A program made the translations under genes and the position numbers. The notes beneath the pieces were generated by a model. The model was not told where the DNA came from. It made no database searches and saw nothing but the letters and a program-made list of their open reading frames with translations. Positions 54,065 to 60,682 of a stretch of DNA of 64,000 nucleotides are shown here, in pieces (position 1 is the first letter of the stretch; the number at the start of each line of letters is the position of its first letter). Location of the stretch: the sequence record NC_025447.1; one strand, 5' to 3'.

Positions 54065-55293
54065 ATAACCAATATATTGAACAAACAATAGTGAAACACT
54101 TGGCTGGGTCACAAGCCTACGGAACCAGTACACCTGAAAGTGATACTGATTATCGTGGTATTTTTCTTGCTAATAAAGAATTTATTCTTACACCCTTCTA
54201 TAAGGTCAAAGAGGTAGCTGATAAAAGCGAAGAAGATACTAAATTCTATGAGTTGAATCAGTATTTAAAATTATACACTGAAGCTAACCCTAATATTCTT
54301 GAATCACTTTGGGTTGAACCTGAACACATTGTTGAAAGTACTGAAATTTATGACTATCTTCGTTCATTTAACCAAAAACTTCTTAGTTCCAAGATTGCAT
54401 TTTCATATACTGGTTATGCATATAATCAGATTAAGCGTATGACAAATCATCACGGTTGGATGGATAAAGAGCGTATTGCTGAAAAACGATTAAATGAGAT
54501 TTTAGAAGAACACCCTGTCGATGAGGTTCTTGCGTGGATGTATGATTCATTCCCACAGTATCTTGTTGAACGTTTAGATACATCCAACTTACATCCATTT
54601 AATGCTAAAAAGATTGATTTTGAAAAATATATGCGTGATACATCATTGCAGTTAGTTTCGAAAAATCCATTAAAGCAATATCATTTCGTAAGATTAGTGC
54701 ATAACTACACTACTGAAAAAATTCTTGATCGTGATTTCAATTTATTGAATTTTAATAATGGTTATGAACTAATTCATTACGGAGAAAACATTTTTGCGAT
54801 TGTTAAGAATCCTAATGAAAGCACTATTAACCATGATGGTTCATTGCGTTATTTTTCAAAAGAACGTAGTACTGAAGAGTTGAAAAACAAACCAGAACTA
54901 ATTGTCAAATTTAACGAAAAAGAATATCAGGAAAATAGTGAGAATAGGAAAAGTTATCATAAATGGAAAGAAAATCGTAATGCCAAACGTGCTATTTTAG
55001 AATCACAACACGGATACGATTGTAAACATGCTATGCACACAATCCGACTTTTGAATAGTGCAGAAGAAGCATTACAAAGTGGAATTATTCAAGTTAAACG
55101 ACCAGATGCACAAATGTTGATGGATATTCGTAATGGTAAATGGAAGTATGAAGAAGTATTAGAATATTTCGATGATAAAGTACAATACATTCGTGATGTT
55201 CTATATAAGAAATCAGTACTTCCTAAAAAACCAAACATCAAGTTAGCATCAAAAATTATCATTGATATTAGAGAAATGCAATGGTATAAGTAA
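54061..55293 (+). CDS. RlaP-like (pol-beta superfamily) nucleotidyltransferase
   Basis: GSQAYGTSTPESDTDYRGIF, NPNILESL, YDCKHAMHTIRLL. Confidence 0.85.
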   Translation: MNNQYIEQTIVKHLAGSQAYGTSTPESDTDYRGIFLANKEFILTPFYKVKEVADKSEEDTKFYELNQYLKLYTEANPNILESLWVEPEHIVESTEIYDYLRSFNQKLLSSKIAFSYTGYAYNQIKRMTNHHGWMDKERIAEKRLNEILEEHPVDEVLAWMYDSFPQYLVERLDTSNLHPFNAKKIDFEKYMRDTSLQLVSKNPLKQYHFVRLVHNYTTEKILDRDFNLLNFNNGYELIHYGENIFAIVKNPNESTINHDGSLRYFSKERSTEELKNKPELIVKFNEKEYQENSENRKSYHKWKENRNAKRAILESQHGYDCKHAMHTIRLLNSAEEALQSGIIQVKRPDAQMLMDIRNGKWKYEEVLEYFDDKVQYIRDVLYKKSVLPKKPNIKLASKIIIDIREMQWYK

Positions 55294-55335
55294 CATATAC
55301 AAGTGTAATGGTACTAAAAATGCCATTACACTCAA

Positions 55336-55341
55336 TAAATA
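55336..55341 (+). promoter_or_regulatory. possible late promoter
   Basis: TAAATA after a 10 bp hairpin (55302-55332), 30 nt before ATG 55371. Confidence 0.45.
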
Positions 55342-55370
55342 CTCAATATAAATTAACACAAGGATTAAGT

Positions 55371-55998
55371 ATGGCACAACAAATTTTCACAGATATCCAC
55401 ACTACCGGAGTTATTAAATTTCAAAATAATTTTTCTGGTGCTACTGGTGTAGACATTAAAAATGATGGTTTTAACATTGTCAGTACTCGGATCTATTGAT
55501 GGTGAAGATAGTTCTCTTAGTGATTCTGTGATTGCATCATTCGGAACTAATAAAAACAGTTCTTTTATTATATCTGGATGGACTGGAATGACTGATTCTG
55601 AAAATAATGTTAAGATAAAAGCTAAAGCTACTAACGAGAATCATGAAACAGAATGGGTAACATTATATGATAGTGCAAGTAATAAGTTATATAATGTATT
55701 AAGTTCTAATAATATTTTAATTAATCCACTGTCGGGCAATTCTGTTTTTAATATTAATTTATCTGATAGAAATACTACTATTTCGATTGGTGCGGCTCCT
55801 ACTGAAGTTTATTCAATTACCATCCTATTAACACAACAAACAGGTTCAAACCTAGTTAATTGGGGTTCTAATGTTAAATGGTCATATAACAGACCAGTTG
55901 TTCTTTCTTATGAAATTGGTGAAAAAGATATTATTTCATTAGAAACATATGATAAAGGAGTTACATGGTACGGTGCATTAATTAGAGCAGGAGTATGA
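55371..55998 (+). CDS. tail-fibre-like protein split by a +1 frameshift near 55453-55497
   Basis: N-terminal MAQQIFTDIHTTG resembles the tail paralog N-termini; C-terminal W..NVKWS..P.LS..DII.L.T.D.G.TWYG module. Confidence 0.55.
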
Positions 55999-55999
55999 T

Positions 56000-58789
56000 A
56001 TGTTAAACAATAATATTGATAATATTGTACAACTTCTTTATGGGCATCACAAATTTATTGAAAGAAATACTGGTGATACAATAGACCCAACAGTACAACA
56101 TTATGTGGTGAACAATCAGGGTGTTTTGGCGAACAACCGTCATTTTATTAACTATTCTGCAATGGAAGGTCAACCAAACGGTGACGGAACAACAGAAGGT
56201 CAAAGTCTATTAATTTTAGGATACATTTATGCGTATCTGGCAACAAATGATCCAATGTTTTTAGATAAGGCAAAGTGGTATTGGGACGCATATCATCAGT
56301 ACTTTTATGCTGGACGTGAATTACCAGATCCACCTACACCACTACAATGTAACTGGATAGTTAATGCCAAAGAACCTATATTGGCTAACTGGCCTTTAGC
56401 TGATGATGGCTGGCCCACACATGGTGGTTTCAAGGGAGTAGAATTTACATTTACTAATGGTCAATGTAAAATACCACATGGTGCACCATATTATGGTCAG
56501 TTCTTGGATAAAGTGACATTTGCATTCAAAGGTGCGTTAGCATGGAACCAAATAAATGCTTCAGTAAAAGCATTATTACCAGATGGTAGTGTTGATTGGG
56601 ATACACCAGGTGAACAATATGATGTTGACTGGATTATCGATTTCATGGGTAGAAAAATCGACTGGGATGGTAATATTTTAGCAGAAGGTTTTGACGAATC
56701 TGAAAAAGGAACTGTTCAATTAAAGAATACAACAATTAATGGTGTATATAAATTAAATTTTGCAAATCGTCAACCAGTAGAATATGGTGGTGTGATAATT
56801 CAACGAAATGAAATGCAACACAACCGCCCTCTTCATGTTCCAATTGATTTGGAATTTGCTGATAACGCATCAGATGCAGAATTATGGTTTAGTGATGCTT
56901 CTTATTTGTTATATAAAATAACAAAAGAAAGAAAACATTATTTGGGTTGGAAATGTTCACTACTAACGTGTTATGCTTATGGTGATATTGACTCCAGAGA
57001 TAAATTTTTCAGACAAAGTACAATTGTAACCACACCATTCACTGATGGTATTTCCTATGAATATTTTTATCCTAGTGATGCTATTGCTAAGTTTGGTAGA
57101 AATTCTCTAGGATATATTACTATCAGGCAAGACCAAAGTGCACAAAGTACTATGGAACAACAAGCTATTTGGTTCAGGGTCAATGCTGATTCTAAATTAC
57201 TTGTAGACTATGGTGGTGTATGTGATGATGGTAAGCCGTTATCATTTAAACCAGTACTGGAATTGTCAAAAACAAAAAATGACCATGATGTTGTTCGTTA
57301 TCGTTGTGGCTTACCGGAAAGTAAAGACCAAAATATCACACATTCATTAACACCTTTAAGTGCATTTGTTAGAGAAAAGAAAGCAGATGGTTTCCCTTAT
57401 ATAATTGCTGATAGTAGAATTGTTGTTCCTTATGGTGCAGCTACGTCCGAAATGATATATAGTACTGATATATTAGTTACACGCCGCGATACCATTAATC
57501 AGTTAGTTTGTGGTGAAGATGATGGTGCTGTTATTGGATTTTGGCTATTAGCAACAAATAAGTCTGAAGTTAAATCTTTTACCTATCGTTCATATGAAGA
57601 TGATTACAATATAAGAATTGTAGATGATAATGGTTGGAGATGGTGGTGGATGATTCCTGCAACACACGGGGAATGGACTACAATCACACTAAGTTCCGAT
57701 ACATTACGTTTATCTGGGTATCAGCCAAATCATCCAAGTTCTGACCCAAGACCAGATGCACCAGTTTATAGTGAACTAGAAGATATTACTATTTTACCTG
57801 ATACAACCCCAGTAGATGGTGTTGCTGCAATAATTGATTGGTATTGTATTAATGACATTCCAGAATTATACACGGATGCTGACGGTGATGACTATACTAT
57901 GACATTTTCAATAACAATTGCAGGTGAATCACCATATACTGCACAGTTAGGGGATTGTGTAATCAAGGATTATTTGTTAAACTCATTGCATTACACACCA
58001 GGAACAATACCATTTTCTAACATCACTGACCCGTATGCGAACCAGTATTCAGGATGGCGTGGTTTACCGTATCCAGGTTATCAATATCCTGTGATATATT
58101 GTTTTAAAGACCAGCCAGTAGATAACACACGCTTAGGAAACATGTTAAGCTTTATGAAAGATTCCCAAACATGGTTTACTCAACAATTCGGTACTGTTGG
58201 TCCGTGTGCACAAGCATATGTTTGGAACCGCTGGGATAACTTAAAATATGGTGAACCAGATACATTTACTATGCTACATTGGGGTGATCAAGCATGGAGT
58301 GGGTATGAACCACGTGCGTTCTTTGGGGCTGCCAGAGCATGGCAAGAACTCGCAGAGAGAGGAATTGAACCACCAGCAGATCTTGTTGAATTTTGTGAGA
58401 ATTGGATTCACTTTTTAATTCAATTTCAAAAAGATAATGATGGTCGTTCACCAACAATCTTCAATAAAGATGGCACAGTTGAAGGTCCAGATTGGGACTT
58501 TACAGGTCATATGTGTGGGTTGTGGTTAGCTGGGGCTTGTGCTGCTGGATTGGCTGGATGTAAAATAGAAGGTCTAACAACACTCGCTGATAACTTAGTT
58601 CTCGAACTTCAAAAGAATTATGTTATTGTAAATCCAGGTTCACCAATGAATGGTTCATGGAGTCCAGCAGTTAGAGAAGGTACTGATAATGGTATGTTTT
58701 TTGGTTTCTGGGCAGGTGAGATTATGCGTGGATTGGGATTATACTCAATGTACCGCTTAAACACACCAAATCGTTTCCGTGATTTATAA
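56000..58789 (+). CDS. large virion-type protein with GH8-like glycoside hydrolase motifs
   Basis: TTEGQS...LATND and NASDAELW match GH8 motifs recalled from BcsZ. Confidence 0.55.
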   Translation: MLNNNIDNIVQLLYGHHKFIERNTGDTIDPTVQHYVVNNQGVLANNRHFINYSAMEGQPNGDGTTEGQSLLILGYIYAYLATNDPMFLDKAKWYWDAYHQYFYAGRELPDPPTPLQCNWIVNAKEPILANWPLADDGWPTHGGFKGVEFTFTNGQCKIPHGAPYYGQFLDKVTFAFKGALAWNQINASVKALLPDGSVDWDTPGEQYDVDWIIDFMGRKIDWDGNILAEGFDESEKGTVQLKNTTINGVYKLNFANRQPVEYGGVIIQRNEMQHNRPLHVPIDLEFADNASDAELWFSDASYLLYKITKERKHYLGWKCSLLTCYAYGDIDSRDKFFRQSTIVTTPFTDGISYEYFYPSDAIAKFGRNSLGYITIRQDQSAQSTMEQQAIWFRVNADSKLLVDYGGVCDDGKPLSFKPVLELSKTKNDHDVVRYRCGLPESKDQNITHSLTPLSAFVREKKADGFPYIIADSRIVVPYGAATSEMIYSTDILVTRRDTINQLVCGEDDGAVIGFWLLATNKSEVKSFTYRSYEDDYNIRIVDDNGWRWWWMIPATHGEWTTITLSSDTLRLSGYQPNHPSSDPRPDAPVYSELEDITILPDTTPVDGVAAIIDWYCINDIPELYTDADGDDYTMTFSITIAGESPYTAQLGDCVIKDYLLNSLHYTPGTIPFSNITDPYANQYSGWRGLPYPGYQYPVIYCFKDQPVDNTRLGNMLSFMKDSQTWFTQQFGTVGPCAQAYVWNRWDNLKYGEPDTFTMLHWGDQAWSGYEPRAFFGAARAWQELAERGIEPPADLVEFCENWIHFLIQFQKDNDGRSPTIFNKDGTVEGPDWDFTGHMCGLWLAGACAAGLAGCKIEGLTTLADNLVLELQKNYVIVNPGSPMNGSWSPAVREGTDNGMFFGFWAGEIMRGLGLYSMYRLNTPNRFRDL

Positions 58790-58790
58790 C

Positions 58791-58819
58791 TTGACATAGA
58801 AAAAGTAATTATGTATAAT
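58791..58819 (+). promoter_or_regulatory. consensus sigma70 promoter
   Basis: TTGACA-N17-TATAAT with TG extension. Confidence 0.85.
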
Positions 58820-58820
58820 C

Positions 58821-58851
58821 AGAGAACTTCATATGGAGTTCTCTTTTTTTT
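58821..58851 (+). terminator. intrinsic terminator
   Basis: AGAGAACTTC-atat-GGAGTTCTCT plus T7. Confidence 0.8.
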
Positions 58852-58864
58852 ATAAGGTGATAAA

Positions 58865-59284
58865 ATGTTAAATGAACGTATTAAAAATGCACTACATGTA
58901 TTGAACCAAGAAGTCAATTCTATTCATAAAAGTACTGACCGTTATAAAGTAATGCATGAAATCAAACAAGAATTGGAATCTATTAATAAGGGAGAGTGGT
59001 GGTATCTTCAGCCCGAATATCAAACTCGTGAATTAAACGATGTTGAAAAAGAAATTGTCAAATTCATCACTACTCGTTATTGTGATACATCAGAGAATGA
59101 TGTATCAGCGAACTTCAATCTTACTAAATTGGAAGTCGAAGAAAAATTCCATTTTGATTGGCTTGATTGGATTGAAATGGTAATGGAACTAGAAGAAAAA
59201 TTCAATGTTGAAGTTGATGAAAAGTTCGAGAATAATGAAACTAAGCTGTATGAACTAGTAGAACATATTCAAAAAATGTTGTAA
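58865..59284 (+). CDS. acyl carrier protein-like domain protein lacking the attachment Ser
   Basis: DWLDWIEMVMELEEKFNVEV versus AcpP [20 protein letters not shown]. Confidence 0.7.
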   Translation: MLNERIKNALHVLNQEVNSIHKSTDRYKVMHEIKQELESINKGEWWYLQPEYQTRELNDVEKEIVKFITTRYCDTSENDVSANFNLTKLEVEEKFHFDWLDWIEMVMELEEKFNVEVDEKFENNETKLYELVEHIQKML

Positions 59285-59337: not shown

Positions 59338-59712
59338 ATGAGTATGTTAGAAATAATTGTTTCAAAAATTCTTATTCCATTTTGGAAACCAATTTCTTTT
59401 GTATTATTAATTGGCGGTTCAGCTTATGCTGGTTGGGAAGCTAATACTTATTACAGTGGATATCAACAAAGCATAGAGCAACAAATAGCTAAAAAAGTTG
59501 ATACCGCCTTGGATAAAATGCAACAAGAAAATGCAAAAAATTACCTTGAAACTAAAAAAATCATGGAAGATAATGCTAAAGTTATTGAAACAAAGGTTCC
59601 TTTTATTGTAGAACGTGAAGTTTATAAGAATGTATGTTTAGATGAAGATGGTGTAAAAGTACTGAATGAACTAAAACAAAATTCTCAAGCAGCGAGGAAT
59701 AAATTCAAATGA
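59338..59712 (+). CDS. inner-membrane spanin (Rz-like)
   Basis: N-terminal TM helix, coiled coil, terminal C.LDEDG..VLN; upstream CTAAATA. Confidence 0.75.
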   Translation: MSMLEIIVSKILIPFWKPISFVLLIGGSAYAGWEANTYYSGYQQSIEQQIAKKVDTALDKMQQENAKNYLETKKIMEDNAKVIETKVPFIVEREVYKNVCLDEDGVKVLNELKQNSQAARNKFK

Positions 59713-60017
59713 AAAAATTATTAGTTCCAATGATTTCTTTTTTAATTATAAGTGGGTGTGCCGAGCAAGTAAAACTACAATCCCCCGCACCAATTAAACA
59801 AGAAATTCTGTTAGAAAGATGTGATGATGATACACCTCTACCACAAAAAATTATGATTGACAAAAATGGTTTTAAAGGTTATGATGGTGCAGAAATTCTT
59901 AAAGTACTTACTCGTTGGGATGCAGTCTACAATGAATGTGCTTTAAAACACGACGCATTGATTAAAACTATTCGTGATTTACAAGGTAAAGATATTAAAA
60001 TCAATATCAAGGAATAA
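59709..60017 (+). CDS. outer-membrane spanin lipoprotein (Rz1-like)
   Basis: lipobox IISG-C, Pro-rich, YNECALKHDAL; ATGA overlap with i-spanin. Confidence 0.75.
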   Translation: MKKLLVPMISFLIISGCAEQVKLQSPAPIKQEILLERCDDDTPLPQKIMIDKNGFKGYDGAEILKVLTRWDAVYNECALKHDALIKTIRDLQGKDIKINIKE

Positions 60018-60018
60018 A

Positions 60019-60630
60019 ATGAACAAATATCATGTTTACTATACGACAAAATTATCACTTCTTGAAGAATTAAATCAACGAAGTACTAAGATGAAACGCT
60101 ACACTTTAAATGGTATTACTTTTCGATATTTCCCACAAAAAGTTCTTACTTTTGTTAAGAATCCAAAATGCGTGGCATGTGGGATTGAAGCTACTGAAGT
60201 ACGCATTGAACGTTCATTATGTTCTGATCCAGTATATGGTAAACCACATTTAAATGTATATGCTGTATGTGGTCTTTATGAAGTTTTAATGACAGTTGAC
60301 CATAATCATCTGGCATCTAAGGGTGGACCTGATTTAGAGTCAAACTTTAATACTATGTGCTCCAGATGTAATCAACTACGTTCGAATAAAACTGAAACAG
60401 TTGATGAGTTTCTTGAGAAAGTTAAAGGTCGTAATCTTCTCCAAGAACATATGAATAATTTCTTTAATGTACAAAAAAAGAAAAATAACATTGACAAGTC
60501 GAAACTACTAGAAGAACGTAGGTTACGTCAAGAATTATGGGAAACTGATCATCTATGGCATGTTCGAGAGTTTGGTCGTCATATGAAAGCTTTGAAAAAA
60601 GAACAGAAGAAATTGAATAAACATGATTGA
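60019..60630 (+). CDS. HNH endonuclease
   Basis: CVACG, TVDHNHLASKGG, NFNTMCSRCNQLRSNK. Confidence 0.85.
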   Translation: MNKYHVYYTTKLSLLEELNQRSTKMKRYTLNGITFRYFPQKVLTFVKNPKCVACGIEATEVRIERSLCSDPVYGKPHLNVYAVCGLYEVLMTVDHNHLASKGGPDLESNFNTMCSRCNQLRSNKTETVDEFLEKVKGRNLLQEHMNNFFNVQKKKNNIDKSKLLEERRLRQELWETDHLWHVREFGRHMKALKKEQKKLNKHD

Positions 60631-60641: not shown

Positions 60642-60670
60642 AGGGACTTGAGTATTCAAGTCCTTTTTTT
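60642..60670 (+). terminator. intrinsic terminator
   Basis: AGGGACTTGA-gta-TTCAAGTCCT plus T run. Confidence 0.8.
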
Positions 60671-60682
60671 TGGAGAAAATAA

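Follow-up and report, generated by a model that had tools for sequence, protein, structure and literature searches.

A serine-less protein with an acyl carrier protein fold encoded upstream of the spanin genes of a 121Q-type giant Escherichia coli phage: a candidate cofactor-independent binding protein

The gene described here stands directly upstream of a pair of spanin genes in a giant E. coli phage, and its product resembles an acyl carrier protein (ACP) that has lost its cofactor-accepting serine (Table 1). We analyzed a window of 64,000 nucleotides from sequence record NC_025447.1, which corresponds to bases 186001–250000 of a 348,532-bp Asteriusvirus genome of the 121Q type. The predicted product is 100% identical to gp510 of Escherichia phage 121Q and to gp313c of phage phAPEC6, and we refer to it as gp510. 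It has a predicted pI of 4.75 and a net charge of -14. The two spanin genes downstream are of the separate type, not embedded. An HNH endonuclease gene (about 60019–60630) lies between the o-spanin candidate and the hairpin that probably closes the transcription unit. This gene is kept in Asteriusvirus relatives; the corresponding position in RaK2 holds a 194-aa gene that BLASTP does not connect with any of the nearby 121Q genes compared, while in BF the position is empty.

Table 1. Features of the gp510 locus. Positions refer to the 64,000-nucleotide window, except where a locus handle precedes them.
Feature	Position	Strand	Basis
Perfect sigma70-type promoter, TTGACA-17-TATAAT, 12/12	58791..58819	+	sequence match
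Intrinsic terminator of the upstream tail-fibre gene, 10-bp stem, 4-nt loop, T-run	58821..58852	+	hairpin 58821-58844 + T-run
Ribosome-binding site AAGGTG, 5 nt 5' of ATG	58854..58859	+	read from sequence
CDS, serine-less ACP-fold protein, 139 aa (121Q gp510)	58865..59284	+	phrog_18343
N-terminal extension, residues 1-55, two-helix hairpin	58865..59029	+	AF2 model, family alignment
ACP-fold domain, residues 56-139	59030..59281	+	Foldseek and phmmer matches to PDB ACPs
Codons D98-W99-L100-D101-W102, equivalent to AcpP D35-S36-L37-D38-T39	59156..59170	+	alignments
W99 codon TGG, at the cofactor-Ser position	59159-59161	+	alignments
W102 codon, invariant within clade II	59168-59170	+	family alignment
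Rz-like i-spanin, next gene of the same predicted transcription unit	59338..59712	+	phrog_1152, E 7e-29
o-spanin candidate, lipoprotein, lipobox ISGC, 4-nt overlap with i-spanin stop	59709..60017	+	XbC2 homologue annotated O-spanin
Terminator-like hairpin after HNH gene, probable transcription-unit end	60642..60671	+	sequence
phrog_21561 genes	L002:4015-4578, L013:2454-3029, L012:2454-3029, L005:1115-1690

Expression of gp510 in this phage is predicted to start from a perfect sigma70-type promoter that is interlocked with the terminator of the preceding gene. The predicted transcript start, at about 58826, falls within the terminator stem. The full hairpin has a folding energy of -13 kcal/mol (z -4.4), whereas RNA begun at 58826 retains only -2.6 kcal/mol of the stem, so transcripts from this promoter, which start inside the stem, would escape termination. 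As read from the sequence, the combined module would block late read-through and then restart transcription. We note that only 1 nt separates the end of the -10 hexamer from the terminator stem and that the same layout is found in A4, ph0011, and JNE01. Across the genome, perfect sites (TTGACA-N16-18-TATAAT) number 32, all on the + strand, compared with 0.75 expected by chance, a sequence pattern that supports transcription by unmodified host RNA polymerase. About 15 of the 32 sites, located between 92 and 154 kb (e.g., C1:92615-153537), share the extended consensus ...AGTACTGTATAAT with a 16-nt spacer, and the leader downstream of several of these sites contains a GGGGAG...CTCCCC hairpin. Judged by these shared letters, this group looks like a phage-specific early promoter family.

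The promoter upstream of gp510 is variable across relatives. It is kept with small changes in A4, ph0011, and JNE01 but is absent in EC.P1, TH47, and the metagenomic relative L006, in which the RlaP nucleotidyltransferase gene ends 2–10 nt before the ACP-like gene. The tail-fibre genes gp507–509 of 121Q (window 55000-58789) form a cassette between the RlaP nucleotidyltransferase and ACP-like genes; A4 and JNE01 share this cassette with 121Q, and EC.P1 and TH47 lack it. In ph0011, all that remains is the final ~30 nt of the fibre sequence and the terminator–promoter module, which indicates deletion. The module therefore occurs only in lineages with a present or past upstream tail-fibre gene (121Q, A4, JNE01, and ph0011). 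An earlier note on this DNA, made from the sequence alone, had taken the promoter to imply early, strong expression; the 12/12 match is confirmed and such expression is plausible in 121Q, but it does not extend to the family. Public sequencing runs offered only Logan contigs, assembled from metatranscriptomes of wastewater and from runs that are probably DNA, which carry no strand or 5'-end information.

The likeness of gp510 to ACPs is weak by sequence but, in a predicted structure, clear by fold. Both relevant Pfam families scored under their cut-offs (PF14573, 19.1 bits against 32; PF00550, 12.1 bits against 20.8). Matches were obtained to the phage ACP families phrog_5934 (E 1e-7) and phrog_4154 (E 5e-6) and, with phmmer, to ~50 solved ACPs in the PDB (E 9e-4 to 0.5). 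The segment FDWLDWIEMVMELEEKF of gp510 aligns with (A)DSLDxVELVMxLEExF of solved ACPs, and Trp99 lies on the ACP serine in every PDB ACP alignment shown (FDWLDW versus ADSLD). The conserved phosphopantetheine-accepting serine of the D-S-L motif is absent from gp510, which has Trp99 (TGG) in its place. At the same time, the acidic residues of recognition helix II of the E. coli ACP, AcpP (D35, D38, E41, E47, and E48), are all present, as D98, D101, E104, E110, and E111, respectively.

An AlphaFold2 (AF2) model of gp510 (pLDDT 83.9) has helices at residues 59–71, 99–113, and 128–138 together with short ones, and the model and Foldseek searches agree on a four-helix ACP fold. The top 50 Foldseek matches in the PDB were carrier proteins, nearly all of them ACPs, aligned over residues ~57–138, and comparison with solved ACPs gave a probability of 1.00 and TM scores by target of 0.70–0.77. 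Searches of AFDB clusters and BFVD concurred, with only the ACP part matched, and the matches in the ESM Atlas were unnamed clusters. The earlier note had described the C-terminal ~80 residues as ACP-like, preceded by an extra N-terminal segment of ~55 residues, and had named AlphaFold and Foldseek as the check; both descriptions agree with the fold, with the placement of Trp99 over the ACP serine, and with the two helices (residues 2–19 and 25–41) modeled in the extension. No structural analogue of this N-terminal hairpin, or of the two-domain whole, was found in the PDB, BFVD, or AFDB clusters. The first BFVD hit was a 432-aa nucleotidyltransferase–ACP fusion from phage CMSTMSU (L014:1631-2929), in which the C-terminal part of the nucleotidyltransferase runs on into the ACP-like protein and which we set aside as a probable sequencing-error artefact because the record is marked UNVERIFIED and the neighboring genes are fragmented.

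Proteins of the gp510 family were found only in RaK2-like jumbo phages (tblastn). gp510 matches phrog_18343 over residues 2–139, hairpin included (E 1.3e-61), and among 1.84 billion representative proteins searched with a profile, only 21 matched at E <= 1e-3, about a dozen of which were full-length two-domain members. The genera represented are Asteriusvirus, Alcyoneusvirus (RaK2 and K64-1), Eneladusvirus (Serratia phage BF and Erwinia pEa_SNUABM phages), and Mimasvirus (Xanthomonas phage XbC2), with further members in phages of Yersinia, Pectobacterium, and Salmonella. Within viral_contigs, we found no relatives of the locus beyond the phage GenBank set. Several GenBank records already label the gene "acyl carrier protein," and our analysis is a reinterpretation of that label, not the report of a new fold. 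What appears to be new is the loss of the serine, a split of the family into two clades, and a conserved tryptophan at position 102; we found no mention of these in the literature searched, including the Sharanji paper.

The family divides into two clades in a maximum-likelihood tree, each with 100/98 support, and the clades differ at the cofactor site. Clade I (XbC2, BF, P0021, and P0023) keeps the canonical (L/M)DSLD and lacks Trp at position 102. In clade II (Asteriusvirus, RaK2, and metagenomic members), Trp102, at the position of AcpP Thr39, is invariant, and residue 99 is W, W, S, S, N, E, S, T, D, D, and K, plus R in P0013. This amounts to at least six different non-Ser residues, including Asp in P0017 and P0019. 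The closest sisters of 121Q, A4 and ph0011, have a Ser codon (TCA) where 121Q has TGG, so that Trp99 of 121Q is a shallow change. Since clade I keeps DSLD and position 99 varies in clade II, we interpret the serine as ancestral to the family and dispensable in clade II.

The replacement of Ser by Trp had been central to the earlier note, which had also advised checking whether homologs keep Ser or Trp. The substitution is real in this phage but does not hold family-wide, with clade I retaining Ser and W, S, N, E, T, D, K, or R occurring in clade II. The weight placed on Trp99 was thus misplaced: position 99 varies freely, and it is Trp102 that is the conserved aromatic residue. We therefore rejected Trp99 as a conserved mimic of the pantetheine arm, and its shallow, lineage-specific origin argues against a designed cofactor mimic. 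In the alignments, the cofactor site of clade II is dispensable and the acidic docking helix is still conserved. All 15 sequences aligned have D98 and D101, conservation of E110 is at least 90%, and E104 is E or D in 15/15 rows as read off the alignment. The N-terminal hairpin has a conserved K-S-T-D-R-Y motif, in which S23 and Y27 are nearly invariant.

Selection appears to maintain the gene. Pairwise comparison of Asteriusvirus copies gave dN/dS values of 0.17–0.38 for the whole gene, which indicates purifying selection, and both domains had values clearly below 1 in nearly all pairs. The loss of the serine and the sub-threshold Pfam scores could be expected of a decaying remnant of a phage ACP that has no present function. 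However, this range of dN/dS, a reading frame that is intact in more than 45 genomes, and the invariance of D98 and D101, and of W102 in clade II, all speak against decay, and we consider that explanation very improbable.

Modification at the canonical site is not expected in gp510. A phosphopantetheinyl transferase was not found among the genes of this genome, BF, XbC2, RaK2, or A4, no second PP-binding domain was found in 121Q, and no carrier-dependent enzyme was detected in this phage. The view in the earlier note that the protein is non-modifiable at this site is thus supported both by the missing serine at position 99 and by the lack of a transferase gene in this phage and four relatives. 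We consider gp510 probably unable to carry fatty acids and probably active through binding other proteins.

Could gp510 still be a carrier, modified elsewhere (for example, at Ser23) or bearing another prosthetic group, within a putative phage pathway? The canonical DSLD of clade I could be modified by host AcpS, and Ser23 is nearly invariant. However, Ser23 is Thr in one member and belongs to an S/T-x-x-D/E helix-capping box, which is not an ACP-type site, and a phosphopantetheinyl transferase was found in none of the five genomes. In RaK2, BF, XbC2, and the metagenomic contig of P0021, the ACP-like gene is overlapped at its start by a gene of 187–191 aa (phrog_21561) that could encode a partner enzyme. 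Its product is far more conserved than the ACP-like protein (58% identity between RaK2 and BF). We note an H-x-D ... H pattern in the product, reminiscent of metal-dependent oxygenases. This gene is absent from 121Q, however, its product has no Pfam or PDB match, and RaK2 has the gene yet lacks Ser at position 99; we therefore rejected it as a source of a partner enzyme for the 121Q protein. Overall, a continued carrier role seems quite improbable. The lost or drifting cofactor site, the conserved acidic helix, the newly fixed Trp, purifying selection, and the lack of a transferase or carrier-dependent enzyme together lead us to favor a cofactor-independent role in protein binding.

The gene neighborhood raises the main rival to a host-directed role, namely that gp510 serves a phage-internal partner. 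Every relative examined has the ACP-like gene immediately before the spanin pair, despite differences in the genes that precede it, and the authors of a study of Eneladusvirus had already annotated the protein as an ACP and remarked on the adjacency (PMC7760394). gp510 could be an adaptor or regulator for a phage protein, possibly in the envelope or lysis module, with the ACP fold as a docking handle, and a shared late-infection or membrane-related role would then explain why its gene always leads the spanin operon. The adjacency holds in Asteriusvirus, Alcyoneusvirus, Eneladusvirus, Mimasvirus, and metagenomic relatives, no terminator separates the ACP-like gene from the spanin genes, and in Aeromonas phage CC2 the RIIB "lysis inhibitor" carries a fused ACP domain with Asp in place of the serine. 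However, these phages are broadly syntenic, which makes adjacency weak evidence, and the i-spanin exposes almost nothing in the cytoplasm that a protein there could contact. To our knowledge, ACP is not used in lipoprotein acylation, which also counts against this explanation. A search for the RIIB family in 121Q found no match in this genome, and we rejected a RIIB link for gp510 on that basis. We regard a phage-internal, possibly lysis-linked partner as possible but unlikely.

A structural role in the particle was also considered, with gp510 as a virion-associated or assembly accessory protein that is packaged or particle-bound. The homologue in Eneladusvirus was represented by 3–5 peptides in purified phage, and in 121Q the gene follows the tail-fibre gene gp509 and has the structural gene gp515 nearby. 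However, phAPEC6 gp313c, which is 100% identical to gp510, is absent from the table of 62 virion proteins of that phage, although its neighbors gp314c and gp306c are included. The tail-fibre neighbor is missing in EC.P1, TH47, ph0011, and RaK2, and so few peptides are compatible with carry-over of a soluble protein that is abundant. Location in the virion is therefore improbable in our judgment.

Taken together, gp510 is best read as a cofactor-independent binding protein with an ACP fold that most likely competes with host AcpP at a putative client, a reading to which we assign a probability of about 40%. The protein would descend from a phage-borne ACP whose 4'-phosphopantetheine arm at the canonical site is no longer needed and could not be carried in this phage, and it would act purely through protein binding. 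The proposed binding surface is the acidic helix II (D98, D101, E104, and E110/E111) together with the clade-invariant Trp102, which in this phage is adjoined by Trp99. This surface would dock on a basic ACP-binding site, and the N-terminal helical hairpin may add affinity or specificity. The most parsimonious target would be a host protein that normally binds AcpP, for which gp510 would compete with AcpP. The best candidate clients are those that bind AcpP without the cofactor, namely PlsB, which is inhibited by apo-ACP, MukB, and AcpS. We infer the binding of a host AcpP client, the identity of that client, and the effect on the host from the features above and from what is known of AcpP.

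Several lines of evidence count for this competition with AcpP, including the ACP fold, the drift at position 99, the conserved acidic helix, the dN/dS values, the lack of a transferase, and the membership of the promoter in the set of 32 perfect + strand sigma70 sites. Predicted docking to AcpS also counts in its favor. A complex prediction for the E. coli AcpS trimer with gp510 scored 0.44 compared with 0.22 for the best control, a result rated "weak support" that may reflect memory of solved ACP–AcpS complexes. The predicted interface with an AcpS protomer involves gp510 residues 98–100, 103–104, 107, 111, and 119–124 of helices II and III, in the canonical manner of ACPs, and includes no N-terminal residues. 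We take this prediction only as a sign that gp510 looks to have an ACP-like, accessible docking face. The earlier note had proposed a decoy that sequesters the partners of ACP; such a role is plausible, with indirect support from the conserved acidic helix II, purifying selection, and the predicted AcpS complex.

Published work on AcpP narrows the choice of client. Apo-ACP inhibits the glycerol-3-phosphate acyltransferase PlsB and cell growth, and SpoT was reported not to bind apo-ACP (review PMC3896788), which makes SpoT an unlikely target. MukB binds both apo- and holo-AcpP through helix alpha2, and its ATPase needs AcpP (PMC8602292). The same study gives a cellular AcpP concentration of about 100 uM; a competitor would therefore need a far higher affinity or a rare target, and simple sequestration would call for a much higher affinity. 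Other observations weigh against competition with AcpP. The equivalents of D35 and D38 may be conserved for structural reasons, identity to AcpP outside helix II is only ~25% and Pfam thresholds were missed, and the Eneladusvirus homologue was detected, at low counts, in virion preparations. The strict linkage to the spanin genes is also not accounted for by a host client.

A more specific version of competition with AcpP, which we regard as a speculative and rather unlikely one, would meet the need for high affinity. Trp102, doubled by Trp99 in this phage, might act as a hydrophobic plug in place of the pantetheine arm and, together with the hairpin, might give gp510 a much higher affinity than AcpP has for a scarce host client to which AcpP binds without its cofactor, such as PlsB or the joint of MukB. 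Chromosome organization or phospholipid synthesis could then be shut off by the phage from an early sigma70 promoter. If true, gp510 would represent a new class of proteins for the takeover of the host by phages, derived from the mimic of a hub protein.

E. coli relies on AcpP as a major hub protein that serves lipid synthesis, lipid A, MukBEF, and Fe-S assembly. If a phage protein retains the docking helix of this hub without its chemistry, it would be a natural probe for the AcpP client that is relevant in infection. The proposal is readily testable, as the host is E. coli K-12 and phages 121Q, phAPEC6, and Sharanji are in culture. Additionally, the Ser-keeping and Ser-free clades form a natural experiment and can be compared directly.

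Some known ACPs bind partners without the cofactor and can be compared with gp510. A close counterpart is apo-AcpP of E. coli, which has the same four-helix fold, is likewise acidic, inhibits PlsB and growth, and binds MukB and AcpS without the cofactor. Helix II is a close match (DWLDWIEMVMELEEKF in gp510), and the differences are Trp for Ser36, Trp for Thr39, and the added 55-aa N-terminal hairpin. The mitochondrial ACP (mACP) of Plasmodium falciparum offers a parallel for the loss of the serine, with the ACP fold kept and the cofactor Ser replaced by an aromatic residue, as by Trp99 in gp510. In that protein, Phe113 takes the place of Ser, and the protein binds Isd11 without the cofactor, with the Phe in the interface (PMC8547962). 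However, the mACP partner is an LYR protein of a eukaryotic organelle, whereas a partner of gp510 is putative. In the gp510 family, moreover, an aromatic residue at the Ser site is not a conserved feature, and the Trp that is conserved stands three positions further on.

Phage proteins provide further comparisons. Serratia phage BF gp0158 and Xanthomonas phage XbC2 gp157 belong to the same family and share the two-domain build and the place upstream of the spanin genes. They differ from gp510 in that the Ser of (L/M)DSLD is kept and Trp102 is lacking, and the host enzyme may still attach phosphopantetheine to them. In Aeromonas phage CC2, the annotated RIIB (L017:2231-3424), a lysis-related protein, has an N-terminal domain that matches PF00550 above the cut-off (25.1 bits) and carries the motif LDDLDVVELVM. 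It resembles gp510 in having a phage ACP fold, an acidic helix II, and a replaced Ser, with Asp at the site as in P0017 and P0019. In contrast to gp510, the CC2 domain is fused rather than free-standing and is without the N-terminal hairpin, and its relation to phrog_18343 is a generic one at the level of ACPs (hhalign probability 94%, 24% identity). Together, gp510 and the serine-less ACP domain fused to RIIB suggest that ACP mimicry, or docking through an ACP fold, is a recurrent phage strategy.
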